Positions 1 to 64,000 of a DNA stretch of 64,000 bases are shown here, in pieces; position 1 is the stretch's first letter, and the number at the start of each line of letters is the position of its first letter. Below the pieces are notes generated by a model. It did not search any database and had not been told where the DNA came from. It saw nothing but the letters and a program-made list of their open reading frames with translations. The stretch lies in sequence record OU509535.1; one strand, 5' to 3'. The translations under genes and the position numbers were made by a program.

Positions 1-56
1 ATAAAATCGAAACTATTCTAAGTATTACTGGTAATCTTCCACAAGCCGACGATTAA
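1..56 (+). CDS. 3' end of an upstream gene, truncated by the window edge (...KIETILSITGNLPQADD*)
   Basis: Open frame from position 3 to TAA at 54-56, followed by a terminator hairpin. Confidence 0.5.
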   Translation, partial: KIETILSITGNLPQADD

Positions 57-68
57 TACATTATAAAT

Positions 69-95
69 AAAAGCCTCCTTTTCTGGAGGCTTTTT
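69..95 (+). terminator. Rho-independent terminator
   Basis: Stem AAAAGCCTCC / GGAGGCTTTT with loop TTTTCT and a T tract. TATAAATA (62-69) lies immediately 5'. Confidence 0.75.
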
Positions 96-131
96 CTATC
101 TGTTAAGTGCAATTAAAAATAAGGAAATTTA

Positions 132-3100
132 ATGTATATTGATGCATATATGGAACGAAAACGTAGTGGTGATGTGTTGCACGTAGTAGAACGAAAAAAT
201 GGAAAGCGTATTCTACGAGAATTACAACCACTATATGAGTATTATGTAGAAAATGTTAATGGTAATCACAAAACCATTTATGGTACTAAAGCAGAAAAAC
301 TGGAATTCGATACTGCATCTGAACTAAAACGAAGTATAGAAAAAAATGTAGCAAATGGAATCAGAACATTTGAAGGTAAATTCAATGTTGTATTCAAAAC
401 ACTTGCTCAATATTATATGGGTACTGAATCACCAGATTTAAACATTGTATTCTTCGATATAGAAACTGATTTTCATAAGAAATTTGGTTATGCATCTCCA
501 TCTAATCCCTTTAATCGTGTAACAGCCATTTCATTATATCAGTCATGGACAGGTAAAGATTATGTACTTACCCTTGCTCCAGAAGATATGACAACAACAG
601 AAGCACAGGATATTGTCAATAAACTAAATGCGGAAACTAATGATCCAAATTCAAGTGTAATTCTTTATACTGATGAAAAGGAAATGTTCATGGATTTCTT
701 TAGTCTAATTGATGATAGTGATGTATTATCTGGATGGAATAGTGAATTTTTTGATATTCCTTACATGATTAACAGAACCAAAATTATCTTCAATGAAGCC
801 ATGACTGCTCGTTGGTGTTTATGGAATAAAAAACCAATTGCACGTGAAGCGGATAACTTTGGTAAATTGGTACAGACATATGATTTGGTTGGTCGAGTTC
901 ATCTTGATTATCTTGCTCTTTATAAGAAACACGCCGCTCAGGTAGAGCAATCGTATAAACTTGATTATATCGCAGAAAAAATCACAAAAGAAAATAAAGT
1001 ACAGTACGAAGGATCTCTGGATAAATTATATAGAGAAGATTATATGACTTTCCTTCGATATTCTAAACAGGATAGTATTCTTCTCAAAAAAATCGATTCT
1101 ATTCTTGACTATATTAGTCTGCATAACCGACTGGCACATAAAGAATGTGTTCTCATCAAAACTACTATGGGTTCAGTAGCACTGATTGACACTTCAATTA
1201 TCAATCTAGCACACAAACGTGGTGAAGTAGTATTTGATAAAAAAGAAGAGGTTGAAATTGATCCAGAACTTGAGTACTATGATGGATACGATGATGATGA
1301 AGACAATAATGATTCAAAACTCAGTGCAAAAGCAGCAGGTGCATGGGTACAAGATCCAATATTAGGATTAGTTGAATACTTAGGTTGTACTGACTTTAAC
1401 TCACTTTACCCAACTGTACTTCGAACTCTAGGAATGAGTACTGAATGTATTCTTGGGCAAATTAGACAAGATTATACAGAAAAATACTTAGAAGAACGTA
1501 TATCTGAACAAAAAGCAAAGTCTAAATCAAAATCATTTGAACCGGAGTGGACAGCAGCATGGCATGGTTTATTCGCCGCTGTGGAGTTTACGATGGTACA
1601 TGAAAGAAGTGAAAAACTACTGACTATTGATTTAGAAGATGGCAGTTCTTTCCAGGCAACTGGTTCACAGTTATATGATATTATATTCAGTCCAGAAAGT
1701 ACTATTGTACTTAGTGCAAATGGAACACTATTTGATAAATCAAAATATGGTGTTATTCCAGATATCCTAACGCAATGGTATTCTGAGCGTAAAGCCCAGC
1801 AAAAAATGGTAATTGATTATAAACATATGGCTTCAGATGGTTGGGAAATCCCATCACCTGATATTGTTCAAAATATGTTTTCACAATTCAGTACTAAATC
1901 ATACTATAAAACAAACCTTCATGAAGAAGATCCAGTATATCTTCTACGTAAAGCTATAGGTGATAATAATCTTGAAGAAATTGCTCGTATTATTGTAGAA
2001 AATAATTTAGTACTAAAAGATGGACGTATTTTTTGTTCAGATGAGGATAAAAAATATTTCAAACAACAAAGTGCCTTCTGGAAACAAAACCAACAAATTC
2101 GTAAAATTCTTCTAAACAGTCTTTATGGTGCACTATTGAACAAAGGAAGTACTTTCTTTGATAAACGACTTGGACAATCAGTAACACTAACTGGCCGCTC
2201 AATGACAAAACACATGGCAAGTCGCATTAATGAAATTACTACTGGAGTGTATAATCACACTGGTGGTAGTGTTATATATGGTGATACTGATTCTGTGTAC
2301 TTCAGCGTTGTTCATTATTTAAAAGAACAAAACATTCCATGTGATCTAAGTAAAGAAGAGATTGTGGATATGTATATAAAAATTGGTGATGAAGTGGGTG
2401 AGTCTTTTCCTGAATTTATGGACAAAATGTTCAATACTGGAATCGAAAAAGGTAAAATTGTTGGTGCTGACCTGGAAATGGTTGGCTCTCGCGGGCTGTT
2501 CCTTAAAAAGAAACGTTATGCTATACTGAAATATTGGGAAGATGGGTTCCGTAAAGATGTTGATGGTAAACCTGGTGAAATCAAAGCAATGGGGCTTGAG
2601 ATTAAGCGTTCAGATACACCAAAATACATCCAGAACTTCCTTGAAGAGACTTTAATGGCATTACTGGTAGGGGAGTCCGAGAGTGAATTAAAACAGCGTG
2701 TACGCGATTTTAAGGCGGTATTTAAGGACAAACCAGCACACGAAAAGGGTTCACCTAGAACAGTGAAAAATTATTCAAACCTTGAAGCTGATTTTAAAAA
2801 TACTGGTAAATGTCATGTAGGTCACGTCCTCGCTGGTATTCAATGGAATATGTTACGTAATGCATATGATGATAAAACTGTGCCAGAAGTTACTGATGGT
2901 ACTAAAGTGATTGTATGTGATTTGAAACCAAATCCACTTGGAATTACTAAAATTGGTTATCCAATTGATTGTGCTGAGTACTTACCTGAGTGGTTCCTTG
3001 AATTACCGTTCGATACAGATAAAATGGAAGAAATTATCTTAACTAAAAAACTGGATAATATCTTTGGTATTCTTGATATGGATATTGGTATTCATGAAAA

Positions 3101-3134
3101 AAGTACTGCACAGGATTTTGGATTTTTCTCGTAA
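132..3134 (+). CDS. 43: Family B DNA polymerase (T4 gp43-like) with 3'-5' exonuclease
   Basis: ExoI FFDIETD, ExoII GWNSEFFDIPY, motif A DFNSLYP, motif B KILLNSLYG, motif C YGDTDS, KKRY; 1000 aa. Confidence 0.97.
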   Translation: MYIDAYMERKRSGDVLHVVERKNGKRILRELQPLYEYYVENVNGNHKTIYGTKAEKLEFDTASELKRSIEKNVANGIRTFEGKFNVVFKTLAQYYMGTESPDLNIVFFDIETDFHKKFGYASPSNPFNRVTAISLYQSWTGKDYVLTLAPEDMTTTEAQDIVNKLNAETNDPNSSVILYTDEKEMFMDFFSLIDDSDVLSGWNSEFFDIPYMINRTKIIFNEAMTARWCLWNKKPIAREADNFGKLVQTYDLVGRVHLDYLALYKKHAAQVEQSYKLDYIAEKITKENKVQYEGSLDKLYREDYMTFLRYSKQDSILLKKIDSILDYISLHNRLAHKECVLIKTTMGSVALIDTSIINLAHKRGEVVFDKKEEVEIDPELEYYDGYDDDEDNNDSKLSAKAAGAWVQDPILGLVEYLGCTDFNSLYPTVLRTLGMSTECILGQIRQDYTEKYLEERISEQKAKSKSKSFEPEWTAAWHGLFAAVEFTMVHERSEKLLTIDLEDGSSFQATGSQLYDIIFSPESTIVLSANGTLFDKSKYGVIPDILTQWYSERKAQQKMVIDYKHMASDGWEIPSPDIVQNMFSQFSTKSYYKTNLHEEDPVYLLRKAIGDNNLEEIARIIVENNLVLKDGRIFCSDEDKKYFKQQSAFWKQNQQIRKILLNSLYGALLNKGSTFFDKRLGQSVTLTGRSMTKHMASRINEITTGVYNHTGGSVIYGDTDSVYFSVVHYLKEQNIPCDLSKEEIVDMYIKIGDEVGESFPEFMDKMFNTGIEKGKIVGADLEMVGSRGLFLKKKRYAILKYWEDGFRKDVDGKPGEIKAMGLEIKRSDTPKYIQNFLEETLMALLVGESESELKQRVRDFKAVFKDKPAHEKGSPRTVKNYSNLEADFKNTGKCHVGHVLAGIQWNMLRNAYDDKTVPEVTDGTKVIVCDLKPNPLGITKIGYPIDCAEYLPEWFLELPFDTDKMEEIILTKKLDNIFGILDMDIGIHEKSTAQDFGFFS

Positions 3135-8703: not shown

Positions 8704-12054
<3,351 letters not shown>

Positions 12055-12068
12055 AAATACTAAAATAA

Positions 12069-13361
<1,293 letters not shown>

Positions 13362-13369
13362 ATAAAATC

Positions 13370-13397
13370 TGAACAAAAACTTGTAAGTTGATATAAT
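13370..13397 (+). promoter_or_regulatory. TGAACA-class promoter (TGAACA-N16-TATAAT, TG extended -10)
   Basis: Distal of two tandem promoters upstream of the SSB gene. Confidence 0.7.
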
Positions 13398-13449
13398 GAA
13401 TATTGTAAGGAGATGTACCTACAAATATAAAAAAGCAGTTAAATAATTT

Positions 13450-13478
13450 TGAACAAAAACACAAAAATGTTCTATAAT
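13450..13478 (+). promoter_or_regulatory. TGAACA-class promoter (TGAACA-N17-TATAAT)
   Basis: Proximal of two tandem promoters upstream of the SSB gene. Confidence 0.7.
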
Positions 13479-13571
13479 TATTTGGTAGGAAGGAAGAATG
13501 AATTTTCTTCTGATATTAGTGACAAAGAAAATATAAACAAAGATGCAATTAAACATAAAGGACTATAATCT

Positions 13572-14657
13572 ATGAAAACTCTAGCAGAAATTCGTGCAGA
13601 ACTAAAAGCTCAAGCTGAAAAACAAGAAGCTCAAAAGAATGGTACATTTGTTGGTGAACGTAAACCAGATTCTTTCTTGGCTTTTTGGAATGTTGGTTTA
13701 AATGAAACTCTAAACCTTCGTTTTCTACCTGATGCAGATGAATCAAATCCATATTTCTGGCGTGAACGTGATATGATTAATCTTACCTTTAATGGTATTA
13801 AAGGTGTTAAACAAGAACGTGTAACTGTTCAAGTGCCATGTAATGAAATGTGGGTACCAAAAAGCTGCCCAGTATTGACTGAAGTTCGCAAATGGTTTGA
13901 TGAAGCAAATAAAACCGGAAACGAGGAACTGAAAAAACTAGCATCCTCTTACTGGAAAAAGAAAACCTATCTGATGCAATGTTTTATTGCTCCAGACAGT
14001 GCACCAGTTAAAGATGATATTGCTCCAGAAAACCCAATTCGTCGAATTCTAGCTAATAAAGATATCTTCGAAAAAGTAAAATCCATTCTACTTAATCCTG
14101 GTATCAAAGAAATGCCAACTCACTTCGAATATGGTCGTGATTTTGGCATTACTAAAACTAAAAATGGTGGTGGGTATAACAATTATGATAGCTCACAATT
14201 TTCTATGTCTGAACGTCCACTAAGTGCAGAAGAACGTGCAGCAATTGAAAAATATGGTCTGTATAATCTAAATGATTTTATGCCAAAACAACCAAACGCA
14301 GAAGAACTACAAGCAATCAAAGAAATGTTCGAAGCATCAGTAAAAGGTGAAGCTTATGATCCAGATCGTTGGGCTTTTGCTTACCGTCCAGCAGGTGTTC
14401 AAAAACCACAAACTACATCTCCTGCTGATGTGATTGCTAGTGCAAATATTCAAACTCCATCTGTAAGTACTGAACCAACAACTCCTGTTGTAGAGAGTAC
14501 CAGTACTGCTGCATCAGACCTGCTAAATCGCCTGAAAACTAACAGTACTGCACCAGTACAGGAACCAGTAGTTACATCAGCACCAGTTCCTGAAACTACC
14601 AAAAGTACTGCTTCAGCAGCAGATCTAATTGCCCGTCTGAAACAACAACAAAAATAA
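13572..14657 (+). CDS. 32: Single-stranded DNA-binding protein (T4 gp32-like)
   Basis: LRFLPDAD, FWRE, CPVL and YWKKK core motifs, with a long S/T/P/A-rich linker; adjacent to uvsX. Confidence 0.85.
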   Translation: MKTLAEIRAELKAQAEKQEAQKNGTFVGERKPDSFLAFWNVGLNETLNLRFLPDADESNPYFWRERDMINLTFNGIKGVKQERVTVQVPCNEMWVPKSCPVLTEVRKWFDEANKTGNEELKKLASSYWKKKTYLMQCFIAPDSAPVKDDIAPENPIRRILANKDIFEKVKSILLNPGIKEMPTHFEYGRDFGITKTKNGGGYNNYDSSQFSMSERPLSAEERAAIEKYGLYNLNDFMPKQPNAEELQAIKEMFEASVKGEAYDPDRWAFAYRPAGVQKPQTTSPADVIASANIQTPSVSTEPTTPVVESTSTAASDLLNRLKTNSTAPVQEPVVTSAPVPETTKSTASAADLIARLKQQQK

Positions 14658-14691
14658 TAAGTTTTTTTTGGTACAATATAGAGTATATAAT

Positions 14692-14717
14692 AAAGGAGCT
14701 ATGGATTAGCTCCTTTT
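14692..14717 (+). terminator. Rho-independent terminator
   Basis: AAAGGAGCTA / TAGCTCCTTT stem followed by a T tract. Confidence 0.75.
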
Positions 14718-14739
14718 CATTTCAAATGGAGAATTGAAT

Positions 14740-15852
14740 ATGAAACTGACAAGTGGTTTTGCTAATATTTTAAAAAATAGTACTGCATCAGTTAAAAAGA
14801 ATACTGGTGTTAGCGTTGGATTCCATGATCCTGATACATGGATCAGTACTGGTAACTACGCATTGAATTATCGAATGACTACAGATTTTCACAAAGGGGT
14901 GCCGCTCGGCAAAGTTGTGATGCTGGCGGGACAAAGTGGTAGTGGTAAATCATTTATTGCTTCTGGTAATATTGTTCGTGAAGCACAGAAGCAAGGTATA
15001 TTCGTAGTTATTATCGATTCTGAGAACGCATTGGATGAAGATTGGCTACATGCGTTGGGTGTTGATACATCACCCGAAAAATTACTAAAGATGAATATTG
15101 GGCTTTTGAATGATTGTGCTAAATTTACATATGAATTTATTGACGGATATCGTAAAGAATATTCAGATGTACCACGAGAAGAACGCCAGAAAGTTTTATT
15201 TGTGGTAGATAGTCTAGGATTTATGACAGTACCAAATGCGGTAGAACAATTCAAAAATGGTGATATGAAAGGAGATTTAGGACACAAGGCCAAAGCAATG
15301 AAAGCTTATATTACTCAATGTGTAAACTCATTTGGTGATTTAAATATTGGCATGGTTTGTGTTAATCACTCATATGAATCACAAGATATGTTCAATCCTG
15401 ATCCAAAGATTTCTGGTGGTCAAGGTATGGTGTATGCTAGTAGTATGGTATTGGCAATGTCACAATTAAAATTGAAGGAAGACCTTAATGGTGATAAAAC
15501 TTCTGATGTTAATGGTATTCGTGCTATCTGTAAAGTAATGAAATCTAGATATGCAAAACCCCATGAAACTGTAGAAATCAAAATTCCGTGGGATACCGGT
15601 ATGAATCCTTACAGTGGATTAGTTGAAATGTTTGAAAAATATAATCTACTTACAAAATCAGGAAATCGTCTTGTTTATACTGATATTGATACTGGAGAGC
15701 AAATTATCAAATATAGAAAAGCATGGCAATCGAATGAAGATCAGTGTTTGGATTTGATTATGAATCAATTTCACAGAAATCCATTGATTACCCCTGTTTC
15801 AGAAGAAGAAAAAGGTGATGAATCTTTTGGTATTGAACCTGATGTAGAATAA
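14740..15852 (+). CDS. uvsX: RecA/UvsX recombinase
   Basis: ISTGNYALN, Walker A GQSGSGKS, IDSENALD, VVDSL. The ATG at 14740 follows a GGAG SD (the track's 14734 start is TTG). Confidence 0.95.
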   Translation: MKLTSGFANILKNSTASVKKNTGVSVGFHDPDTWISTGNYALNYRMTTDFHKGVPLGKVVMLAGQSGSGKSFIASGNIVREAQKQGIFVVIIDSENALDEDWLHALGVDTSPEKLLKMNIGLLNDCAKFTYEFIDGYRKEYSDVPREERQKVLFVVDSLGFMTVPNAVEQFKNGDMKGDLGHKAKAMKAYITQCVNSFGDLNIGMVCVNHSYESQDMFNPDPKISGGQGMVYASSMVLAMSQLKLKEDLNGDKTSDVNGIRAICKVMKSRYAKPHETVEIKIPWDTGMNPYSGLVEMFEKYNLLTKSGNRLVYTDIDTGEQIIKYRKAWQSNEDQCLDLIMNQFHRNPLITPVSEEEKGDESFGIEPDVE

Positions 15853-15864
15853 CTATTTAAAATT

Positions 15865-15894
15865 ATGGTTGACTTATGTGTCAACCATTTTGTT
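15865..15894 (+). terminator. Rho-independent terminator
   Basis: ATGGTTGAC / GTCAACCAT stem followed by TTTGTT. Confidence 0.65.
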
Positions 15895-15932
15895 ATATTT
15901 TTAGTATAACATTTTAAATGAGAATTTTATAA

Positions 15933-17065
15933 ATGCCTAAAAAATTAACACAAGAAGAAGCTGAGCTAAAAATCATCCAAAAATGCAATGAAAACAATTA
16001 TACATTTGGACATTTTGTATATGTCAATAGCAAAACTACTATAACAATAAAATGTCATTGTGATTATGTATGGGATGTTATATATAATAATTTTGTTAAT
16101 AATGGAACTCGTTGTCCGAAATGTTCTGGCAATTTACGTTTAACACAAGAATATGTGGAAAATAAAGTAGAAGAAATTTGCAAACAAAAACAATATACAT
16201 TTGAAAAATTCATATATATTAATAATAACACAAAAATATCACTAACATGTCATTGTGGTCATAAATGGAAATGTTCTTATGATAATTTTGTTATTAATAA
16301 TAGAGGCTGTAGAAAGTGTGGTGGTACTCTAAAACTTACACAAGAAGAAGCCGAAATGAACATTAAATTGAAATGTATTAATATGAATTATAAATATAAG
16401 CCGTTTATATATAAAAATCAAAAAACTTATATTTCATTTGAATGTCATTGTGGTAATGAATGGAAGTGTGAATATAGATCTTTTATTGATAATGATAGTG
16501 GGTGTCCAAAATGTAATAATGGCGTATCATTCACACAAAAAGAGGCAGAAACTCTTGTAATTGAAAAATGTTTATCTCGTAAGTATACATTTGAAAAATT
16601 TAATTATATTGGGTCTATGAACACAAAATTGAATCTTATTTGTCATTGTGGTAATAGATGGACTTGTGTTTTTCTAATTTTGTAAATCAAAATAATGGCT
16701 GTCCAATATGTTCTGGGAATGAACAACAATATGCTTATATTCATTCTATTATTGATAATGATAATATAATTGCTATAAAATATGGTATAGAAACTATATT
16801 AAATTCAAGACAATTGCAACAAAATAGAAATAGTGTTTATACAATATCTTCATTAAAAACTTACTTTTTTGATAATATAGAAAATTGTAAATTAGCAGAA
16901 AAAGAATGTATTAAACTTTTTCAAAAAGAAAATAAAGAACTTTTCGGAAGAAAAGGTTATGTAACTAAAGAAGAAATGAAGGATGGTTGGTCAGAAACAA
17001 CATCCGTTTCTAACATTGATAAAATCATTTCTATCTATGAAAAATGGGGTGGAATTAAACAATAA
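15933..17065 (+). pseudogene. Free-standing homing endonuclease (tandem CxC...CxxC zinc repeats plus a C-terminal T5orf172/GIY-YIG-like domain), split by a 1-nt frameshift
   Basis: Four CHC...W...CxxC repeats. The 4th repeat is completed only by moving from frame 15933 to frame 16658 at the T5 run 16669-16673. C-terminal domain has YAYIH, KYGI and GWSET. Confidence 0.75.
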
Positions 17066-17529
17066 TGGCAAAACCGTGGCATTGGATAATTAAGGACGAT
17101 AAGAGCAAACTTCTTGATTTGATTACATATTTCAGTACTGAAATTGATGAAGCAAAGAAGGAAGTTAAAAAGGTTGGTTCTGTTGAGAAATTAGCACAAG
17201 ACTTACCTGGCTGGCATGAAACACGTTTGTCCCAATTACAAGAACTTGAAGCAGTACTGGAAACACTTGAAATAGAAATGAAACAAATACAGGCAGAAAA
17301 ATTTAAATACTATCTGGAATCATATCGACGTCAGCTATCCAGTTCAGACTGTAAGAAGTATGTTGAGGGTGATAAAGACGTGTGTGATTTGGCTGAAGTT
17401 ATTAACGAAGTTGCTTTTCTACGAAATCAATACACCAGTATTATTAAATCATTAGAAATGAAAGCATTCCAATTAAACAATATTGTTAAATTGCGTTGTG
17501 CTGGCTTGGAAGACATTAGACTAGATTAG
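17065..17529 (+). CDS. uvsY: UvsY-like recombination mediator
   Basis: Helical coiled coil with KYYLESYRRQLSSSDCKKYVEGD motif, located between uvsX and uvsW. Confidence 0.7.
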   Translation: MAKPWHWIIKDDKSKLLDLITYFSTEIDEAKKEVKKVGSVEKLAQDLPGWHETRLSQLQELEAVLETLEIEMKQIQAEKFKYYLESYRRQLSSSDCKKYVEGDKDVCDLAEVINEVAFLRNQYTSIIKSLEMKAFQLNNIVKLRCAGLEDIRLD

Positions 17530-17531
17530 AA

Positions 17532-17555
17532 AAAAGGACGCTTATGCGTCCTTTT
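17532..17555 (+). terminator. Rho-independent terminator (possibly bidirectional)
   Basis: AAAAGGACGC-TTAT-GCGTCCTTTT. Confidence 0.85.
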
Positions 17556-17574
17556 ATACGTTATAGGGAAATAT

Positions 17575-18396
17575 ATGACAAATAAACTTGAAGAATTTGT
17601 GAATTCTATTGCAGTACTGGATACTGAAACCAATGGTATTCTTGAAACCGATGAAATTATAGAATTTAGTATTTCATTTCCAGAATCATTGAATGATTCT
17701 ATTGATAATATAATGAATTACACCAATCGTTATAAACCACAAAAAGAAGTACCAGCTATAGCAAGTTCAGTTCATTTTATTACAAATGAAGATTTGGAAA
17801 GTTGTGGAACTTATGATTCTGAATTACCAACAATTGATGCATTAATGGGAAGTCGTCAATATTATGTTGGTCACAATGTACAGTTTGATCGTAGAATGAT
17901 GCGTCAATGTGAAGATAAATATCGCAGTGAACCTTCTCAATATCTATATAAAGATAATTGGATTTGCACTTTACGATTAGCCAAAAAACTTCATGCAGAA
18001 GATTCTGATTACGATAATATGACTCTAAGTTACTTATGGTTTAAACTTGGGTGTTATAAGGGGCATCGTAAAGTAGAAGCACATAGTGCACGTGATGATG
18101 TTTTTATGTGTTACTCGGTGCTAATTAAATTAGTTGAAGAATGCATTTCACTTGGAATCATTGATCCAAATAATGATATTGGATCTCAAATTATTCAGTA
18201 CTGTAATACTCCTATTATCTATGAAAAAGTAACATTTGGTAAACACAAAGGAATGGATTTTTCTGAATTACCAATGGATTACCTTATGTGGATGATTACA
18301 AATAGTGACATTTTAAATACTGACAAAGAAGATTGTGATATGGATTTGGTGGCAACTTTTGAGTACGAATATAACAGAAGGACAAACGCCAATTAA
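17575..18396 (+). CDS. DEDDh 3'-5' exonuclease (ExoX / epsilon-like)
   Basis: VLDTETNG, GHNVQFD, AHSARDD; C-terminal TFGKHKG module. Confidence 0.88.
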   Translation: MTNKLEEFVNSIAVLDTETNGILETDEIIEFSISFPESLNDSIDNIMNYTNRYKPQKEVPAIASSVHFITNEDLESCGTYDSELPTIDALMGSRQYYVGHNVQFDRRMMRQCEDKYRSEPSQYLYKDNWICTLRLAKKLHAEDSDYDNMTLSYLWFKLGCYKGHRKVEAHSARDDVFMCYSVLIKLVEECISLGIIDPNNDIGSQIIQYCNTPIIYEKVTFGKHKGMDFSELPMDYLMWMITNSDILNTDKEDCDMDLVATFEYEYNRRTNAN

Positions 18397-18413
18397 TAAC
18401 AAGGAAGATATAA

Positions 18414-19949
18414 ATGGAAATACCAAAAGTAGGAACAGGAACGTTCAGACCAAAGGCCAAAAAAGGTACTTCGTGTAAATTGATTATTCAAGATGAGGTT
18501 AATTGTAAGTTCGAAGGGTTAGATCCTTCCTTGCGTTCATTATTGATAAAAGAAGTATCATATATTTTACCATATGCGAAATTCACTCCAGCAGGTAGAC
18601 TTGGCCGCTGGAATGGTGAAGTGAATTTTATGAATATGGGTGGTGGTACATATTTACATATGCTTGATAAACTTCTTCCAATATTAGATGAGTACGAAGT
18701 ACAAATTGAATTAGAAGATCATAGGATTGATTATGGTTTTCAGTTCGATCCGATTGATGAGAATATTTTCAGTGATGTAGTATTTCCAATTGGGCATCAC
18801 ATGGAAGGTAAAAGTGTTATTCTTCGTGAACATCAAGTAAACTCAGTAAATGCATGTTTGGCAAATCCTCATGGATTGTTATTAGCAGCAACTGGAGCCG
18901 GAAAGACGATTATCTGTGCAGCGTTAGCTCGTTCAGTACAGAAATACGGTCGTTCAGTAATTGTTGTCCCTAGTACTGATTTAGTTCAACAGACATATAA
19001 TGATTATGTTATGATGGGACTTGATACTGGGATGTTTTGTGGTGCTCAAAAGGATTTCGGTCATCAACATACTATTACTACATGGCAATCATTTAACTCC
19101 TTGTGGAAAAAAACCAAGAAGGGTGAAATAGAATTAACAGAGCAAGATGTTCATGATTTTATTGATGGTGTTGTTTGTGTTATTGTTGATGAAGTACAAA
19201 CAGCCAGAGGTGATGCATTATCTAATCTATTATCAAAAGTAATGCAGAATGTTCCTTTGCGTTGGGGTTTAACTGGAACAATTCCAAAAGATCAAATTGA
19301 AGCAGCCAGAATTAAATGCAATCTTGGCAATGTGATTTATACTGTTACATCAAAAGAATTACAAGATAAAAAGATACTAAGCACGTGTAACATTAGTTGT
19401 ATAAAATTAAAAAGTTCAATGAAGTTTGAGAATTATGCCGAAGAATTAAAATTTCTAACAACTGATAGAGAAAGAATGTCATATGTTGCTAAGCTTATTC
19501 AAGCATTATCTGAATCAGGTAATACATTAGTATTGGTTGATAGAATTGAATGTGGTAATCTTTTATGTGAATTTTTAGGTTTACCAAAATCAGAATTTGT
19601 TAAAGGTGACACAAAGAAAAAAGATCGTGAATCTTCTTATGGTGAAATTCGCTGGGCTGATAATAAAATTTTAATTGCTACATATGGGGTTGCTAGTACA
19701 GGCATAAGTATTTCACGACTATATAACGTAGTTCTTATAGAACCTGGAAAAAGTTTCATTAAGACAATTCAAAGTATAGGACGTGGATTACGCGTTGCCG
19801 AAGACAAAGACCATGTTGAAATCATTGATATCAGTAGTTCAACGAAATACAGTGCAAAACATCTCAGAGAGCGTTTGGTTTATTACAAGGAAGCAAAATA
19901 TCCACATAATGTCATAGAAGTAAAAGACTGGCAAAATCTCTCAGACTAA
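18414..19949 (+). CDS. uvsW: SF2 DNA helicase UvsW
   Basis: LREHQ, Walker A ATGAGKT, VDEVQ, GLTGT, QSIGRGLR. Confidence 0.92.
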   Translation: MEIPKVGTGTFRPKAKKGTSCKLIIQDEVNCKFEGLDPSLRSLLIKEVSYILPYAKFTPAGRLGRWNGEVNFMNMGGGTYLHMLDKLLPILDEYEVQIELEDHRIDYGFQFDPIDENIFSDVVFPIGHHMEGKSVILREHQVNSVNACLANPHGLLLAATGAGKTIICAALARSVQKYGRSVIVVPSTDLVQQTYNDYVMMGLDTGMFCGAQKDFGHQHTITTWQSFNSLWKKTKKGEIELTEQDVHDFIDGVVCVIVDEVQTARGDALSNLLSKVMQNVPLRWGLTGTIPKDQIEAARIKCNLGNVIYTVTSKELQDKKILSTCNISCIKLKSSMKFENYAEELKFLTTDRERMSYVAKLIQALSESGNTLVLVDRIECGNLLCEFLGLPKSEFVKGDTKKKDRESSYGEIRWADNKILIATYGVASTGISISRLYNVVLIEPGKSFIKTIQSIGRGLRVAEDKDHVEIIDISSSTKYSAKHLRERLVYYKEAKYPHNVIEVKDWQNLSD

Positions 19950-19965
19950 AAAAATGGATTGAAGC

Positions 19966-19993
19966 TGAATGAAATTGAAAAAAATGATATAAT
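19966..19993 (+). promoter_or_regulatory. TGAACA-class promoter variant (TGAATG-N16-TATAAT, TG extended -10)
   Basis: Intergenic, upstream of the 20026 ATG. Confidence 0.5.
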
Positions 19994-20025
19994 TATTGTG
20001 TAAAATCAACAAGGAAGTAGAAATT

Positions 20026-20451
20026 ATGGAATTAAGAACTAGCATTTCTTTTATTGGTACTGAAGATGTACTATCTAAAATCGATTATCTAATCAATGAA
20101 GAATCTCTTATTGATGATATGGTTTATTCGCTGGATTTTATCTCTGAACTGGAAACAGAAGATACTTATGTTTATCGTTGTTACAGTACTGGTGATTCGT
20201 GGGTAAACATCTATGATATTCATTCACGATTTTCTACAAATGGAATTGATAAATGTGATATCATTTACACCAGTACTGATTCAGAGACTTATGTTGATGT
20301 AATCAGTTTGAGTGGAAATTTTGATGCTTATGTTGATTGTGATCCTGAAAAAATTCAGGAAATTTGTGAAACATATGGACTTGAATTTTTTGGTTCAGAT
20401 GAACCAGAAGAAGAATACGACGACGATGAAGAAGAAGAGGGATATTATTGA
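20026..20451 (+). CDS. Acidic hypothetical protein (about 141 aa)
   Basis: Probable start is the ATG at 20026 after AAGGAAG; very acidic C-terminus. Confidence 0.65.
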   Translation: MELRTSISFIGTEDVLSKIDYLINEESLIDDMVYSLDFISELETEDTYVYRCYSTGDSWVNIYDIHSRFSTNGIDKCDIIYTSTDSETYVDVISLSGNFDAYVDCDPEKIQEICETYGLEFFGSDEPEEEYDDDEEEEGYY

Positions 20452-20948
20452 TGAATATTTTAACACCAGAAAATAACGCATTTGATATGGATTTGGTATC
20501 AGATTTAATTCCCGAAGAAATGTATTGTGTACTGGATTTAAGTCCAGGTGGCGATAGTGATTTTTATTTTCGTCATATCCTCAATACTATTACATTCAAC
20601 AGCAACAGTGCTGATATTCAAATTGGTAATAAAGTACTACAAGTGCCTCTCAACTGGCAAATTATGTTAGGTGACGAAGACACTGGAATGGTAGAAATGT
20701 GTACTATTGAAAACATTCTTAATATGAAAGAACCAAAAGCATATGTTTTCAATCCAATTCGTTCTATGTATCCACGTTTTGAACCAGTTAAAGTACTAAG
20801 AGCATTTACTCTACCTACTAAATGGCAAATTCCAATTGTACCAAAAAAGAATTTGCTATGTGTTCCATTACAACACGGTTCTAATCCACCTTGCGTATAT
20901 TTCGCAGATGAAAATGAGAAAATTCAGGATTTACATTTGGGGCTATAA
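20451..20948 (+). CDS. Conserved hypothetical beta-rich protein (possibly Hint-like fold)
   Basis: TGATG coupling to the upstream gene; beta-strand periodicity. Confidence 0.6.
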   Translation: MNILTPENNAFDMDLVSDLIPEEMYCVLDLSPGGDSDFYFRHILNTITFNSNSADIQIGNKVLQVPLNWQIMLGDEDTGMVEMCTIENILNMKEPKAYVFNPIRSMYPRFEPVKVLRAFTLPTKWQIPIVPKKNLLCVPLQHGSNPPCVYFADENEKIQDLHLGL

Positions 20949-31863: not shown

Positions 31864-33597
31864 ATGAAAAAATATCTGAAAAATTTAGATACAGAAACAG
31901 AAAATCTATTTAATGAAATTCGTTCATTACTAAGTAACAAAAATAGTAAATCATGGCATACCTCAATAAATGCTTCTGGAAGGGAGCATTTAAAAAACGC
32001 GGTACTCAGAGTCTATCCAAGTAGTGATTTTTTATTATCAGAAGCATTAAAACTGATTATCAATCAAGAAGAACCACCGTATGCAGTATGTGGTAGAAAA
32101 TGTAAGTATTTTAATGGTCAGTATGATAGATATTGTTCATTGGGTGTCAAACCCAATAAAAACACTTATTGTGAGAAGTGCAATAAACACTGGCGAGAAA
32201 AGAAAAACAAATCCACAAAAGAAAACTGTCTAAATCAGTACAATGTTGAACACCCTTTTCAGCGAAATGATGTGAAAACAAAAGTACATGAAACTAAAAT
32301 ACGAAAATACGGTACTAATTATAATAAAATAATTTCAAACAAATCATTCAGTACTTATTATAATAAAACTGGATATTCATGTCCATTGAGTAATCCAGAT
32401 ATACAACAAAAAATTAAAGAAACTAATATTAAAAATTATGGATATGAAAATCCCGGTTCATCTCCATTAATTGTACAAAAAAGAAAAAATACCCAGAAGA
32501 AATTATATGGTCATGAACATTCTATGCAGAATGGTGATATAAAACTAAAGGTATTGATTAAATCTGCCACACAGAGAATGGATAGTATAAATTCAAAACT
32601 TGAATTTACTAATTTTATTCCTTTGTTTGATATTAGTGATTTAATTGGTTTGGATACATATAACAAAATGCCATACTGGTGTAATACACATGGTTTATTT
32701 TATTCATGTAGTAATTATAAAATTATATGTAATGAATGCACTCCCGTTCATATAAGCACACAACACAAAGAGATATTAAATTTTATAGAAAATCTTGGTA
32801 TTGAATGTGTAACGAATACACGCTCTGTTTTAAAAAGTACTATGGAATTGGATATTTTTATACCTGACTTGAATGTTGCAATAGAAATTAATGGTATGTA
32901 CTGGCATAGTACTGAATACAAAGAACGACTGTATCATCAAAACAAAATGTTGGAATGTAAAGAACATGGCATTCACTTAATACAGATATGGGAAGATGAA
33001 TGGAATACCAAACAAGATTTGGTTAAATTTCGTTTGATGAATGTATTAAAATGCTCCAGTACTATATATGCAAGAAAATGTAAAATAAAAGAAATCAATA
33101 AAAAAGAATGTGATAATTTTATTAATACATACCATATCCAAGGTTCTAGTTCATCATCTATTAGAATTGGTTTATATTACGAAAATGAATTATATGCAGT
33201 TATGACATTTGGAAAATCCAGATTTGATAAAACTGTTCAGTATGAATTGATACGATATTGTTCAAAAAGTACAGTCGTTGGCGGTGCATCTAAATTATTA
33301 AAGTACTTTGAGAAGAAATACAAACCAGTGTCGTTGATTTCTTATGCAGATGCGTGTTGGAGTACTGGTGATTTATATATTAAACTTGGTTTTACATATA
33401 ATGGATTAACTGAACCTGGTTATTTTTATTACAAATCAAGTACTGGTAGAATTTCAAGGCATCAATGTCAAAAGAAAAAACTAGTCAATCAGGGATATGA
33501 TGAAAATTTATCAGAATATCAAATATGTACCACTGTACTTAAATATAACAAAATATTTGATTGTGGTAATTTTAAATTCACTAAATATTACATATAA
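31864..33597 (+). mobile_element. Free-standing PD-(D/E)XK homing endonuclease, copy 2
   Basis: ELDIFIPDLNVAIEINGMYWH, ARKCKIKEI...YHIQG...YELIRYC; same architecture as 27813. Confidence 0.8.
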
Positions 33598-40181: not shown

Positions 40182-40186
40182 AATAC

Positions 40187-40220
40187 AAAATTCAGTACTT
40201 AATCAGTACTGAATTTTTTT
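40187..40220 (+). terminator. Rho-independent terminator built from two AGTACT copies
   Basis: AAAATTCAGTACT-TAATC-AGTACTGAATTTT followed by a T tract. Confidence 0.75.
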
Positions 40221-40234
40221 ATAAGGTATAAATT

Positions 40235-40426: not shown

Positions 40427-40432
40427 AATTTT

Positions 40433-40461: not shown

Positions 40462-40498
40462 AAACTTGATAAAACACCAACACTAAGGAAACAAACAA

Positions 40499-40741: not shown

Positions 40742-40756
40742 AAAGAGGTACCCAAG

Positions 40757-41874
<1,118 letters not shown>

Positions 41875-41875
41875 T

Positions 41876-41902
41876 AAAAAAAGGAGGACTGTTGTCCTCC
41901 TT
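41876..41902. terminator. Terminator between convergent genes (U tract on the minus strand)
   Basis: A-run followed by AAGGAGGAC-TGTT-GTCCTCCTT. Confidence 0.8.
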
Positions 41903-43353: not shown

Positions 43354-43710
43354 ATGATAATTTTATACTTTCTATGGATTAATATATTATTAGTACTGAT
43401 AACTACAGGATTTAGTACTACTGCAATTGTTGTTTATATTTTAAGTTCAGTGTTTATTATTATGAGATCATTATCTATAATTTTCAGTACTGAATTAGCA
43501 AAAAAGAATAATGATTTTTATGTCTTTTTATCGGAACTTAAAGATGATAATCCAAAATTAACTAAAAGTAACATCGTGTGTTCCAATTTAATACATTTGA
43601 TACTAATATTTGTATTTTTGCATAGTTATATTGCATTGGGCTTTGTATTATTTAATGTTATTATTAGACTTATCGAATCATATAAAATGGAGAAATTATT
43701 TAATGGCTAA
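43354..43710 (+). CDS. Small integral membrane protein (118 aa, 3-4 TMDs)
   Basis: Strongly hydrophobic segments at both ends. Confidence 0.65.
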   Translation: MIILYFLWINILLVLITTGFSTTAIVVYILSSVFIIMRSLSIIFSTELAKKNNDFYVFLSELKDDNPKLTKSNIVCSNLIHLILIFVFLHSYIALGFVLFNVIIRLIESYKMEKLFNG

Positions 43711-44227
43711 AATTATTTTATGTACAGATAAAAATTACGGTATAGGATATAAAAATACAATTCCGTGGCATAGCAGCGAAGATTTTAAACACTTCAAAGA
43801 AGAAACTTTGAATAAAACTGTTGTGATGGGATATAATACATGGAAATCCCTACCAAATAAACCATTGTCAAAAAGACTTAATATTGTACTGGTTAATCGT
43901 GAATATGAAGACCGCGATATGTATGATCAAACAAACGTCTTATTTCTGGATGAAGATAATTTAGAAAGTATTATTCGTAATAATCCAGATTGCGTTATTA
44001 TTGGTGGTGCATCAATTTATAAAATGAGTTTGCCTCATGTAGATGAAATCGTACATAGTATAATTCCCAAAGAATTTGTATGTGATTGCTTTTTTGACTT
44101 TACTATTGATAAACGTGTGATTATTGAACGCGAAAGTTGTAAAACACTTGATGATGGTATTATGGTGGATTATTACAAATGTCAACCAAATCCAGATTAT
44201 GATGATTATGTGGATTCATATCAATGA
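43703..44227 (+). CDS. frd: Dihydrofolate reductase
   Basis: GIGYKNTIPWH, EDFKHFK, VVMGYNTWKSL, IIGGASIY; true start is the ATG at 43703. Confidence 0.93.
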   Translation: MAKIILCTDKNYGIGYKNTIPWHSSEDFKHFKEETLNKTVVMGYNTWKSLPNKPLSKRLNIVLVNREYEDRDMYDQTNVLFLDEDNLESIIRNNPDCVIIGGASIYKMSLPHVDEIVHSIIPKEFVCDCFFDFTIDKRVIIERESCKTLDDGIMVDYYKCQPNPDYDDYVDSYQ

Positions 44228-44347
44228 AGATAAAGTGAAGCTAAAACCATTTGCACAAAGATTAAAAGATGCATAGACAGTGGTGATGCTTATTATAGAC
44301 AAACTGCTGGAAAACATACTTACACTTACAAGTTAAGGAAAACTTAG
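44208..44347 (+). pseudogene. Possible frameshifted gene remnant (..LKPFAQRLKDA/IDSGDAYYRQTAGKHTYTYKL..)
   Basis: Two abutting frames read as one protein-like C-terminus if one T is restored at 44274. Confidence 0.3.
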
Positions 44348-44370
44348 TATCATATACTCAAGGAAGAATA

Positions 44371-45729
44371 ATGTCAATAAAAAAAGAAACTACAAAATTA
44401 AAACCCACCGCAGATCAGAAAGTTATACTTGATGATTTTTTGGATAGAGTTGATAATTATCCAGGTAGGACTGAAGCTGTTCTTTCTGCACCTGCTGGTA
44501 CTGGTAAAACGTTCACCACTGCTGAAATTATTAAATTACTTTATAAAGATTATAATATTGCAGTAACTTCTCCTACACATAAAGCGAATTCTGTAATTCA
44601 AAATATGCTTATCAACCAAGCAGGGATTACAAAAGAAGATGCAAAGGTAAGTACTATTCATTCTTTTCTTGGGCTTAAATTGGTACAGGAAAAAAATCAT
44701 CAAGTACTGAAGCACGATCCACATAGTAAATTATCAACAACCAATGTTGATGTTCTTATCGTGGACGAATGTTCTATGATTTCAGAAGAATTATATTTCC
44801 ATATACAGAATCAATTACATCGTGTACGAAGGGCAGTGTTATACATTGGCGATAAATGTCAGTTACCACCAGTAGAAGCTGAAGTTATTGGTAAAGAAAA
44901 ATTATCCCCAACCTTTGATGTTTCAGTACAGTATACATTAACTGAAGTACTACGTCAGGCAATGGACAATCCAGTACTATCAGTCGCTACTGCTATCAGA
45001 GAATGCATCGGTACCAATAAAGATCCAATGCATATTATGGTCAATAACACAAAAGGTCATGATACTATCACACCCATTGATGATGAAGATTTATTTCTGA
45101 ATGTATATAAGGATTTTATTATTGAAAACAAAGGTAATAGTAATAAAATTTTTGATTTCGTGAATGAAAATAAAATCCTTGCATATACGAATATGAGAGT
45201 TAATATTGCAAACATGTATATCAGAAATCAATTATATGATGTACTTGATGAATTCGTAAAAGGGGAACCTATTGTATTTGAGAGTATTACCGAAAATAGT
45301 CCATATTCTGTTCAACAAATTATTCAGTGTCCAAGAGTGAGAAAAGAATCATTTATGGGTATTGATTGTTGGCAGTTTCAGTTACTTAATGGTAGTTTCA
45401 TTTACGGAGTTGGTCCTTCATCACGTGCGGCAATGGAAGATCATTTACAGGATATGGTAAGAAAGATTGAAAAGAAAGTTTTTAATCCATTGACAAAACG
45501 ACCATATGTATGGCAGGATTATTATATCATTCGCAATAAAATGCATATCATTAATTACCCATACGCAACAACTGTCCACAAATCACAGGGTAGTACATTC
45601 GATAATATTTGGTTTGATACTGATTTCATTGAGAGAATCCCAAACAATGATATGAAATGTCGAATTCTTTATACTGCAATGACACGTCCCAGATATAGTG
45701 TAATGTTAAGACAGAATGATTACTATTAA
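44371..45729 (+). CDS. dda: SF1B 5'-3' DNA helicase (Dda/RecD-like)
   Basis: APAGTGKT, TSPTHKA, VDECSM, GDKCQLPPV, YATTVHKSQGSTF. Confidence 0.9.
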   Translation: MSIKKETTKLKPTADQKVILDDFLDRVDNYPGRTEAVLSAPAGTGKTFTTAEIIKLLYKDYNIAVTSPTHKANSVIQNMLINQAGITKEDAKVSTIHSFLGLKLVQEKNHQVLKHDPHSKLSTTNVDVLIVDECSMISEELYFHIQNQLHRVRRAVLYIGDKCQLPPVEAEVIGKEKLSPTFDVSVQYTLTEVLRQAMDNPVLSVATAIRECIGTNKDPMHIMVNNTKGHDTITPIDDEDLFLNVYKDFIIENKGNSNKIFDFVNENKILAYTNMRVNIANMYIRNQLYDVLDEFVKGEPIVFESITENSPYSVQQIIQCPRVRKESFMGIDCWQFQLLNGSFIYGVGPSSRAAMEDHLQDMVRKIEKKVFNPLTKRPYVWQDYYIIRNKMHIINYPYATTVHKSQGSTFDNIWFDTDFIERIPNNDMKCRILYTAMTRPRYSVMLRQNDYY

Positions 45730-62399: not shown

Positions 62400-62428
62400 T
62401 TGACAAATCATTTCAAAAGAGTTATAGT
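62400..62428 (+). promoter_or_regulatory. Sigma70-type promoter (TTGACA-N17-TATAGT)
   Basis: Near-consensus elements with canonical spacing. Confidence 0.7.
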
Positions 62429-62466
62429 ACTGAAAATGTTTAATTGAATAGGACGGATAAACCCAA

Positions 62467-63582
62467 ATGAAAGGTAAATTTTTCTTCAAAGAAAAAGGTA
62501 AAGAAATCGAAATCCAGGAGTTTGATTTCGAATACGTTCTTAATTCTTTGTGTAAAGAATATAATCGCCATTCCAACAAAGAGTATTGCTATACTGTGAT
62601 TGTTAGTAGAACTTATAATTCTATTGGGGAACCAGTTTTTGATGTTCGCACATTAAATTTAAAAGAAATTTATTACGACAATGTTCGTTTGTGTGTATAC
62701 GATCTCATGATGGACAAAATTGCATTTCGCCGTCCAGAAATCAAAAACTTACCAGTTCCTGCATTACAGAAAGAATACCAGGAATGGAAAGAAGGTAAAG
62801 TTAAAAAATCGAGTACGCCAGTTGTTGTCGATATTCCTTTTAAAGAACTAAAACGTACTGAAATCTCCAGTAACGATCATCGTATTCCAGATATTATGTC
62901 ACAATTTAATGTGGATAGTTCTAAAGCATTAAAAGTACTGGACTGGATTGTTAATCTTCCAGTATGTACACAAGAAGTTACAATTAAAGTTCAAAACATC
63001 AGTACAAGACAACTGGAACTCAATGATGCATTACAACAACACAGTGAATATATTCATAAACTAATGAATAACTTAACATCTGCGTTAGAAACATTATTTC
63101 CATTAAAGCCAACATTTACTCAGAAGTTATTTGGTAAACAACCAGTTATTAAAATAGAACAATCTGATTTAAAAAATGTGATGGATACATTGAAGAAAGC
63201 AGTACAGTATGACACCACTAAGTTTAATGGTATTGATACTATGTTTTCTTCTTTAATTAGTGATATTCGTGCAATGCAGGACGAATTTGGTACAGCAGAA
63301 AATGCATGTGATTTTGCTATCAGTACATTAGAAGATAACTTTGAATTTGAATTAATGAAAAATCGCATTCTGAAAATGTCGATTACTAATACATCATCAG
63401 AAGCTGCACTAATTGGGTTCAATAAGAAATACAGAATAGATGTGGATCAAATGGTTGATATTCAAACAACAACGATTCCATGGATTATCATGCGTTTGCA
63501 GAATCAGGTAGGACAAACTGTTGATTCTGAAACAGTTGATATTCTTAAAAATTTGGCATACGGTAAAAAAGATGACAAATAA
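62467..63582 (+). CDS. Hypothetical protein with a C-terminal TelA/XpaC-like coiled-coil region (371 aa)
   Basis: Long helical C-terminal half with FTQKLFGK; adjacent to a TelA-like gene. Confidence 0.4.
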   Translation: MKGKFFFKEKGKEIEIQEFDFEYVLNSLCKEYNRHSNKEYCYTVIVSRTYNSIGEPVFDVRTLNLKEIYYDNVRLCVYDLMMDKIAFRRPEIKNLPVPALQKEYQEWKEGKVKKSSTPVVVDIPFKELKRTEISSNDHRIPDIMSQFNVDSSKALKVLDWIVNLPVCTQEVTIKVQNISTRQLELNDALQQHSEYIHKLMNNLTSALETLFPLKPTFTQKLFGKQPVIKIEQSDLKNVMDTLKKAVQYDTTKFNGIDTMFSSLISDIRAMQDEFGTAENACDFAISTLEDNFEFELMKNRILKMSITNTSSEAALIGFNKKYRIDVDQMVDIQTTTIPWIIMRLQNQVGQTVDSETVDILKNLAYGKKDDK

Positions 63583-63585
63583 CGG

Positions 63586-63613
63586 TTGACACAGTAACAG
63601 AGTGCTGTATAAT
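63586..63613 (+). promoter_or_regulatory. Sigma70-type promoter (TTGACA-N16-TATAAT)
   Basis: Perfect hexamers upstream of the 63675 ATG. Confidence 0.75.
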
Positions 63614-63674
63614 CTTTTATATCGAAACAACATACAGCACTTAAAACTTTTAATTCACCGAAGGAAACATTACA

Positions 63675-64000
63675 ATGTCCGAGAAAGAAATTAATCCCAC
63701 TAAAGCAGCCAAGAAAACTAACACTAAAACACGTAAAGCTCTAGCTATGGATGATTCTATCCTGGAAACTCCAAAAAAGAATCTACCGTCAAATGTTGCT
63801 TTGCGTGATACAAAAGGTACTCAACTCGCATTAACTATTGAAAACATCAATAGCATTGGTACTGTAACTGGTACTAAAGTTGCTGCATTAAGCAATGACA
63901 TTCTAACTAAAGTCAATGCAAGTGATACCAGTACTGAATTTGGTAAATCAGTATCCACTATTCTGAATCTTACTCGTTCAGTTGATATTGAATCACTTGT
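63675..64000 (+). CDS. TelA-like toxic anion resistance protein (5' part, truncated by the window edge; not in the ORF track)
   Basis: AAGGA SD, open to the window end; INSIG..TG.KVAALSNDILTKV..SD...EFG resembles the TelA N-terminus. Confidence 0.55.
   Translation, partial: MSEKEINPTKAAKKTNTKTRKALAMDDSILETPKKNLPSNVALRDTKGTQLALTIENINSIGTVTGTKVAALSNDILTKVNASDTSTEFGKSVSTILNLTRSVDIESL

Follow-up and report, generated by a model that had tools for sequence, protein, structure and literature searches.

A stretch of 64,000 nucleotides of phage DNA from sequence record OU509535.1, which we refer to as the window, carries 145 copies of the palindrome AGTACT. Our analysis showed that this word is enriched at the DNA level, that its enrichment follows a lineage of jumbo phages, and that it is a fixed element of their early promoters. 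The presence of AGTACT within the early-promoter architecture is a new finding. We tentatively prefer the interpretation, which is possible but short of probable, that the extended motif ttC-AGTACT-Gaa is the site of a sequence-specific reader of double-stranded DNA, a phage-encoded symmetric dimer, and that it functions both as an early-promoter operator and as a dense genome-wide tag. Positions 30000–42000 of the window are 99.7–99.8% identical to the Klebsiella phages K64-1, RaK2 and Muenster, and the phage is therefore a RaK2/K64-1-type Klebsiella jumbo myovirus (Alcyoneusvirus, about 346 kb). The initial annotation of the window had compared AGTACT to HIP1, the iterated palindrome of cyanobacteria, and this comparison was borne out, as the word occurs in all reading frames, between genes and throughout a clade. 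Three points were absent from that annotation: the placement in early promoters, the restriction to one clade across different hosts, and the elimination of the tetramer GCGC. No mention of an AGTACT or GCGC word signature for these phages was found in the literature searched.

AGTACT is enriched as a DNA word

The initial annotation had estimated by hand about 140 sites, a GC content of about 32%, about 22 expected sites and a roughly six-fold enrichment. These estimates were close. The exact count is 145 and includes every position that had been listed; the GC content is 32.2%, and base composition predicts 21.2 sites. In 100 dinucleotide-preserving shuffles of the window the count was 14.0±4.1 with a maximum of 24, and none of the 100 reached 145. 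The enrichment also stays under Markov models, which predict 30 sites at order 2 and 68 at order 3. AGTACT ranks first of the 4096 hexamers by order-3 z-score, and no other hexamer exceeds its over-representation in any null model up to order 3. The next-ranked hexamers are the overlapping words CAGTAC and GTACTG, and CAGTACTG is found 30 times in the window against 0.5 expected. In the RaK2 sequence that we analyzed (341 kb) there are 922 AGTACT sites against 115 expected, and 244 copies of CAGTACTG against 2.9. All 10-kb bins of RaK2 are enriched 3.5–10 fold save the last, which is a 1-kb fragment. The lowest full bins correspond to the tail-spike region, and 220–250 kb, a block of small early genes with AGTACT inside their promoters, reaches 16–20 fold.

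The maximal (order-4) Markov model predicts 137 sites in the window (240 AGTAC × 238 GTACT / 416 GTAC), close to the observed number. For the whole of RaK2 it predicts 836 (1465 × 1417 / 2483) against 922 observed. This match arises because the 5′ A and the 3′ T join the GTAC core independently, and it does not refute the enrichment. GTAC alone is present at 2.2–2.5 times expectation, and the NGTACN words show a graded excess from AGTACT at the top (8.0) to CGTACG at the bottom (0). Distances between sites are near-exponential (coefficient of variation 0.96) except for a spike at 20–22 bp, which comes from promoter pairs; this rules out a regular spacing or phasing of the sites.

Phages usually avoid 6-bp palindromes, and AGTACT, enriched 7–8 fold, does not follow this rule. 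GCGC, CTAG, GGCC and many GC-rich hexamers behave in the opposite way and are depleted or absent. The ratios of observed to expected counts in the window and RaK2 are 0.28–0.30 for CTAG, 0.29–0.41 for GGCC and 0.51 for AGCT. Twenty-four 6-bp palindromes, mostly GC-rich, have no copy in the window, including CTTAAG (0 against 21 expected).

For the coding tests we used a set of 73 genes that covers 94% of the window; the open reading frame (ORF) ORF147 was left out. This set contains 137 of the sites. The other eight, three of them in ORF147, lie outside it at the same density as the sites inside. The initial annotation had noticed the word as Ser-Thr, Val-Leu and x-Tyr-x, and we counted 81 AGT-ACT (Ser-Thr), 45 xxA-GTA-CTx and 11 xAG-TAC-Txx sites. 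It had also proposed that a loss of enrichment under an amino-acid-preserving null model would refute the signal. Permutation of synonymous codons within each gene, which keeps protein and codon usage, gave 43.0±5.5 sites against the 137 observed (z=17). The frame expectations in this permutation were 27.3, 2.4 and 13.3, and the excess is about 3-fold or greater in each frame. Shuffling of whole codons gave 24 sites, so amino-acid order alone lifts the expectation from 24 to 43. The enrichment therefore consists of two effects, an approximately 3-fold effect on synonymous choice and a 1.8-fold effect on amino-acid order.

The second effect can be seen in the dipeptides. Ser-Thr occurs 149 times, where 82 are expected and the reversed control, Thr-Ser, reaches 91; 54% of the Ser-Thr dipeptides are spelt AGT-ACT. 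Val-Leu occurs 144 times against 99 expected and 96 for the reversed Leu-Val control. Among the 24 Ser-Thr codon pairs AGT-ACT alone is raised (81 against 26), whereas TCA-ACT (3 against 19.5) and TCT-ACT (4 against 17.7) are depleted. The initial annotation had ascribed the excess to DNA-level rather than protein-level selection, and this was supported: the word is raised in all frames, between genes and in promoters, and the Ser-Thr excess is limited to AGT-ACT. The pressure on this DNA word is so strong that it alters the proteins as well. The chance that the enrichment is an artefact of base composition, codon usage or dipeptide content is negligible. AGT, ACT and GTA are indeed common codons, with 36%, 49% and 43% of their families, and amino-acid order does raise the expectation, but the synonymous and whole-codon shuffles and the codon-pair table, whose effect is unique to AGT-ACT, rule this explanation out; the equal density outside the gene set and the lack of an excess in other low-GC phages also speak against it.

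The word extends beyond the hexamer. Flanks were tallied for the 712 RaK2 sites that do not belong to the early region. C occupies position −1 in 44% of them, against a background of 14.5%, and G in only 8%; at position +1 the shares are 47% for G and 6% for C. Positions ±2 and ±3 favor T to the left of the hexamer and A to its right, and further out the base frequencies equal those of the background. The extended consensus is therefore a graded 12-bp palindrome, ttC-AGTACT-Gaa. Complementarity between the left and right flanks is barely above independence (249 against 231, 246 against 215, and 283 against 246), and 463 of the 712 sites are palindromic over 6 bp only. Symmetric and nearly independent flanks fit two half-sites that are read independently on duplex DNA, not a hairpin, and a hairpin or cruciform element was ruled out on this ground. 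One-mismatch variants of AGTACT are at or mildly above expectation. The deamination neighbors AGTATT and AATACT, with observed/expected ratios of 0.91–1.13, are like the other neighbors and show no depletion.

Distribution among phages and turnover of sites

Relatives were compared over 43-kb regions surrounding their DNA polymerase genes. Among all hexamers AGTACT ranks first in PBECO4 (71 against 14 expected), EJP2 (113 against 14), GAP32 (90 against 14), CBB (97 against 14) and XaC1 (128 against 14), whose polymerases are 81–62% identical to that of the window; this holds for every sampled relative with a polymerase at least 62% identical. No enrichment was seen in Atu_ph07 (1 against 14; polymerase 42% identical) or PA5oct (3 against 14; 38%). 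All five IMG/VR contigs with a polymerase at least 70% identical are enriched, 5.3–7.6 fold, and none of about 36 contigs with a polymerase at most 43% identical is, although most of them have a similarly low GC content. The comparison with relatives that the initial annotation had suggested thus places the excess in the whole RaK2-like clade, that is in six cultured genera or groups and five IMG/VR contigs, and not in distant relatives. The hosts of the enriched phages are Klebsiella, Escherichia, Cronobacter, Pectobacterium and Xanthomonas. The trait follows phage lineage, not host, which favors a reader encoded by the phage. In the Asteriusvirus and Mimasvirus loci (PBECO4, EJP2, GAP32 and CBB) another word, CTGGTG, the core of E. 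coli Chi, is also among the most over-represented hexamers (35–41 copies against 14–15 at order 2, codon effects of Leu-Val included).

The absence of GCGC has the same phylogenetic boundary in our sample as the excess of AGTACT. GCGC is absent from the window (0 against 42 expected), from RaK2 (0 against 212) and from 143 kb of GAP32 (0 against 140), and it is absent from every AGTACT-rich relative locus and IMG/VR contig examined. It is near expectation in Atu_ph07 (76 against 59), PA5oct (42 against 37) and most distant contigs; two distant contigs are also free of it (0 against 10 and 0 against 6). The absence suggests that a nuclease, encoded by the host or by the phage, cuts at GCGC with lethal effect.

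Conservation of individual sites was compared between orthologs, with 33–39 gene pairs per comparison, at sites where the encoded residues are conserved. The hexamer is identical at 25 of 31, 22 of 30, 12 of 18, 14 of 18 and 15 of 18 such sites in the different comparisons. This identity of 67–83%, against a baseline of 30–36% for same-frame hexamers (P 5e-3 to 5e-7), means that shared sites are 2.2–2.7 times better conserved at synonymous positions than the background. The DNA polymerase gene has 7–9 sites in each of six genera. Its alignment contains 25 site columns, of which one is common to all six genera and 16 occur in one genus only. Sites are also gained and lost between close strains, with seven sites present only in KP13-7 and four only in the window. 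Most sites are not positionally conserved, and therefore density is maintained rather than position, while individual sites are moderately constrained.

AGTACT in early promoters and at other sites

In the early region of RaK2, outside the window, a promoter scan found 12 perfect (12/12) matches to the sigma-70 consensus in 17 kb, and the early promoter consensus is AAaaAGTACTTGaca-N9-tCAGTACTGtataat. Seventeen of the 18 strongest plus-strand promoters of this type have AGTACT in the spacer. In 16 of the 18 it lies 1–3 nucleotides upstream of the −10 hexamer. Seven promoters also have another copy, and its final T either coincides with base 1 of the −35 hexamer or lies next to it. The twin copies are 20–22 bp apart, which is two helical turns, and therefore lie on the same face of the helix. 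In about half of the promoters the sequence ...ACTG provides the TG of an extended −10 element. A symmetric site thus overlaps core promoter elements of one temporal class, as is typical of an operator. Leader hairpins in the same region are centered on the word (GGGAATC-AGTACT-GATTCCC). Promoter-associated sites make up about 30–45 of the 922 sites of RaK2; in the window there is only one such locus, 62400–62431.

Twin-site early promoters are also found in GAP32 and XaC1 (aaaAGTACTtTGACA...gAGTACTtTATAAT; aaaAGTACTTGCA...cgAGTACTtTATAAT). Compared with RaK2 the flanking bases differ, but the hexamer and the layout are intact. That the −10/−35 placement is kept across genera while the flanks change indicates function. 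In GAP32 the twin-site promoters lie at 1–25 kb of the record, and none was found at 305–355 kb. A 54-nucleotide RaK2 promoter query matched 377 places in 62 phage records, almost all of them RaK2-like jumbo phages. The papers on CBB and GAP32 list RpoD-like promoters, and AGTACT is not remarked upon there. Another class of sigma-70-like early promoters in GAP32 (locus 8793–21725) does not contain AGTACT; its −35 TTGAC lies inside a GC-rich hairpin (e.g. GGGGTTGACTTCGGTTAGCCCC), followed by TGTATACT.

The window covers a replication and nucleotide-metabolism block with interspersed virion protein genes. It encodes DNA polymerase, RNase H, large terminase, SSB, UvsX, UvsW, primase, helicase, NrdA/B, Dda, topoisomerase II and clamp loader, and no tRNA gene was found in its 64 kb. 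Sites of note are listed in the table. In the terminator of nrdB each arm contains one AGTACT (40194 and 40205), as the initial annotation had described, and the fold has an energy of −13.6 kcal/mol (z −5.5). In the promoter candidate, which by its consensus match may be functional, AGTACT (62426–62431) overlaps the −10 box. The four Ser-Thr sites belong to the Ser/Thr/Pro-rich C-terminal tail of a gene identified as SSB from the RaK2 annotation. The homing endonuclease gene has about four sites per kb, so that a mobile gene bears the signature at full strength.

Table. Location of AGTACT sites and associated features in the window (positions of the 64,000-nucleotide stretch)
Feature	Position	Strand	Basis
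Dispersed AGTACT, 145 sites, about 1 per 440 bp	1..64000	.	exact count
DNA polymerase gene, 8 AGTACT	132..3134	+	six-genus alignment
Four in-frame AGT-ACT (Ser-Thr)	14466..14609	+	sequence and translation
Seven AGTACT in Hef-type homing endonuclease gene (31864-33597)	32350..33444	+	positions, sequence
Intrinsic terminator 3′ of nrdB	40187..40217	+	13-bp stem, 5-nucleotide loop, then T run
Three AGTACT within 100 bp, 5′ part of ORF147 (43354-43710)	43392..43491	+	sequence
Predicted sigma-70-like promoter 5′ of the ORF at 62467	62400..62431	+	TTGACA, 17-nucleotide spacer, TATAGT

Several differences from related phages were observed along the window. ORF115 of RaK2 is a single 382-amino-acid ‘endonuclease’ with CapR homology domains and a treble-clef zinc finger, and belongs to a set of four paralogues in the genome. 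Its counterpart in the window is two overlapping ORFs (15933–16685 and 16658–17065), through a frameshift or a sequencing error. A 543-amino-acid ORF (DUF7487; 27810–29441) is shared with KP13-7, and RaK2 has only the 128-amino-acid ORF130 there; the longer ORF is probably a mobile or deleted gene. The large terminase ORF (9371–12043) has 890 amino acids in the window phage and RaK2, 878 in EJP2, and about 545 in PBECO4, GAP32, CBB and XaC1, a difference suggesting that some lineages carry an inserted element (an intein or a fused domain). The nrdA annotation of KP13-7 is split, with about 4 kb and several ORFs between its two parts (KP13-7 locus 31755–35850), and the match to the DNA polymerase is likewise in two pieces. 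These insertions are presumably homing elements, and they are absent from the window.

Candidate readers and rival explanations

In the mechanism that we tentatively prefer, the RaK2-like clade would encode a symmetric dimer, each half of which reads one half-site of the motif. At early promoters, the putative reader bound to the −10-proximal site, and often also to the −35 site, would gate the host RNA polymerase, most likely switching the early class off and less likely switching it on. Elsewhere, one site per 370–440 bp would give it a dense hold on phage DNA, which might mark, organize or protect it. A host chromosome of 57% GC would have about 15 times fewer sites per kb, as estimated from composition alone. 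Selection for site density would then override codon choice and, in part, amino-acid choice.

A number of points weigh against this interpretation. About 900 sites per genome is far beyond the need of a classical regulator, and the genome-wide role that we suggest is pure inference. Most sites differ between genera, and maintained density is also what a non-adaptive drive would produce. The deficit of mismatches inside sites between close strains is in the expected direction but modest, both for KP13-7 (5 against 10–12.5 expected) and for RaK2 (6 against 7.3–11.2). The search for a DNA-binding protein, which covered 40 ORFs, homologue tracing and one structure prediction, identified none. No convincing DNA-binding Pfam domain was found in 30 window ORFs and 10 early ORFs that different genera share, where the scan returned only CapR/zinc-finger nuclease, ClpS-like, KTSC, NT5C and ParE-like domains. 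A helix-turn-helix protein of GAP32 was rejected as a reader since it has no RaK2 homologue. Another rejected candidate is encoded by a conserved early gene pair behind an AGTACT promoter (RaK2 240247–240929, also in GAP32 and XaC1), which specifies a clade-restricted 118-amino-acid protein and, just downstream of it, a 72-amino-acid protein with a ParE-like toxin domain (Pfam E 2e-10). The 118-amino-acid protein has 43 homologues, all in the clade, but its predicted structure, of low confidence (pLDDT 71, pTM 0.31), gave no fold match and its sequence no PDB match. Virions of the clade members phAPEC6 and 121Q contain an ‘inner body’ made of protein, which is packaged within the DNA (PMC7247149). 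These phages thus do have virion proteins that associate with DNA; nothing ties them to AGTACT.

The main rival to a reader protein is an epigenetic mark, which we consider rather unlikely. A phage methyltransferase or other modifier would target AGTACT or GTAC, and the modification state, in particular the contrast between fully modified virion DNA and DNA fresh from replication, would control early promoters or help to tell the strands apart, in the manner of GATC, Dam and SeqA. The strict 6-bp palindrome is a ScaI site and has the typical format of a type II enzyme target, and in early promoters it lies where region 3 of sigma-70 contacts the spacer, so that a methyl group could alter promoter use. 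RaK2 DNA was reported to be methylated (CpG) and resistant to many restriction enzymes (PMC3622015). The initial annotation had suggested looking elsewhere in the genome for a methyltransferase or binding protein that recognizes GTAC or AGTACT, and none was found to which the word could be assigned; nor was a gene for a ScaI-like enzyme recognized. Three DNA-modifying candidates of RaK2 were considered, and none could be tied to AGTACT. The C5 methyltransferase gp194 is closest to DNMT3 catalytic domains, which fits CpG methylation (PMC3622015). The 172-amino-acid Dam-type adenine methyltransferase gp447 (PF05869) is conserved in the clade (64% identity in Asteriusvirus, 45% in Serratia BF), but it belongs to a broad phage Dam family with 1224 records. 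The Mom-like protein is missing from the window phage, which nevertheless has the full number of sites. In RaK2 its gene (ORF149; Pfam Mom, E 4e-37) is flanked by frd and dda, whereas only about 140 bp separate these genes in the window (44227–44371); a 585-bp ORF occupies the position in KP13-7. A second N6 methyltransferase, found in GAP32, has no RaK2 homologue. Moreover, protective modification does not need enrichment, and preferences that extend three bases past the hexamer look more like the matrix of a binding protein than like a strict 6-bp enzyme site.

We regard it as improbable that the word is spread by a non-adaptive drive, in which biased repair, gene conversion or replication turns near-matches into AGTACT, and promoters and terminators co-opt it. 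The maintenance of density without position, the predominance of lineage-specific sites, the gains and losses between close strains and the near-random spacing are all as such a drive predicts, and amino acids are altered as they are by the drive of uptake sequences. The methyl-directed repair bias that the initial annotation had raised is disfavored, however, since no single precursor is depleted (AGTATT/AATACT 0.91); this makes repair of the very short patch (VSP) type by a single route unlikely. The fixed promoter placement across genera points to function, and symmetric flanks that avoid G at −1 and C at +1 fit a reader. We know of no mechanism or gene for a drive of this kind, which also counts against it. 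Equally improbable is a site that serves a conserved protein of the host, for example RNA polymerase or a nucleoid-associated protein, which the phage would recruit or titrate. The promoter sites do abut both sigma-70 contact elements, about half of them supplying the extended −10 TG, and AGTACT is also the center of the SlmA binding site of enterobacteria. But SlmA-type flanks (G before, C after) are the least used, at 8% and 6%, which ruled out a site of this type, and the trait follows the clade: it is present in Xanthomonas as well as enterobacterial phages, and absent from related Pseudomonas and Agrobacterium phages and from the roughly 36 low-GC T4-like contigs. A signal in RNA, such as a GUAC tetraloop hairpin or a processing site in transcripts, is very improbable. 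It would agree with the hairpins in the nrdB terminator and the early leaders, but promoter sites lie upstream of the transcription start, few sites are part of longer palindromes, flanks are barely more complementary than chance predicts, and flank preferences are symmetric on the coding strand.

In its statistics AGTACT resembles HIP1 and uptake sequences, and in the proposed mechanism SPO1 TF1 and phi29 p6; it does not have all the defining features of any of them. Like HIP1 (GCGATCGC), it is a short palindrome several-fold above composition and low-order Markov expectation, dispersed through coding and non-coding DNA independently of frame and shared by a clade. HIP1 is a different word, in cells rather than a virus, and contains CGATCG, the site of a known methyltransferase; no cognate enzyme was found for AGTACT. 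AGTACT is also a fixed part of a promoter class. The uptake sequences of Haemophilus (USS) and Neisseria (DUS) likewise occur about once or more per kb, lie in coding DNA and shift peptide content, and their inverted pairs act as terminators, similar to the nrdB terminator. They are not palindromes, however; the competence machinery recognizes them, and uptake together with recombination spreads them, and a lytic phage has no uptake step. Chi, an over-represented word that marks ‘self’ DNA and moderates the nuclease RecBCD, is a possible functional analogy, but Chi is asymmetric and skewed between the strands, and a host enzyme reads it in single-stranded form, whereas AGTACT is self-complementary with symmetric flank preferences and distributed by phage clade. 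TF1 and p6 are the closest mechanistic model, as phage-encoded proteins with many binding places on the genome that repress early promoters. TF1 needs hydroxymethyluracil DNA, p6 has little sequence specificity, and neither is known to leave an 8-fold enriched hexamer; no homologue of either was identified. GATC with Dam and SeqA in enterobacteria, a short palindrome both clustered in control regions and dispersed, is the model for an epigenetic mark. GATC is not known to be appreciably enriched genome-wide in E. coli, and it is slightly low in RaK2 (observed/expected 0.78), and its writer and reader are known. In the PeSL (promoter-early stem-loop) cassettes of T4-type phages, sigma-70-type early promoters likewise recur with stem-loops nearby, in a plastic stretch made up of small early genes, which matches RaK2 222–248 kb and the early regions of GAP32 and XaC1; these cassettes occur only in early regions, however, and are not known to be linked to any word that is enriched genome-wide. 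The target of ScaI is the identical palindrome; phages normally lose restriction sites, and this one is enriched.

A more speculative extension, which we judge distinctly unlikely, is that AGTACT enrichment and GCGC elimination are two halves of one phage system that tells self from non-self by DNA words, not by base modification. A phage nuclease would destroy host DNA that bears GCGC, and the phage genome would escape because it is free of GCGC. A second phage protein would read the AGTACT tags to mark, protect or organize phage DNA and to time early transcription.

Short palindromes would be expected to disappear from phage genomes, and a whole clade of 350-kb phages has instead multiplied one. 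The pressure for it skews the choice of codons and even the sequence of proteins, and the early promoters incorporate the word. This implies a sequence-reading component, whether a regulator, a chromatin-like protein or a modification system, that would be central to the biology of widespread enterobacterial jumbo phages, several of which are candidates for phage therapy. AGTACT-rich and GCGC-free DNA is a simple signature for recognizing members of the clade in metagenomes, and the motif itself provides a direct handle for finding this component.

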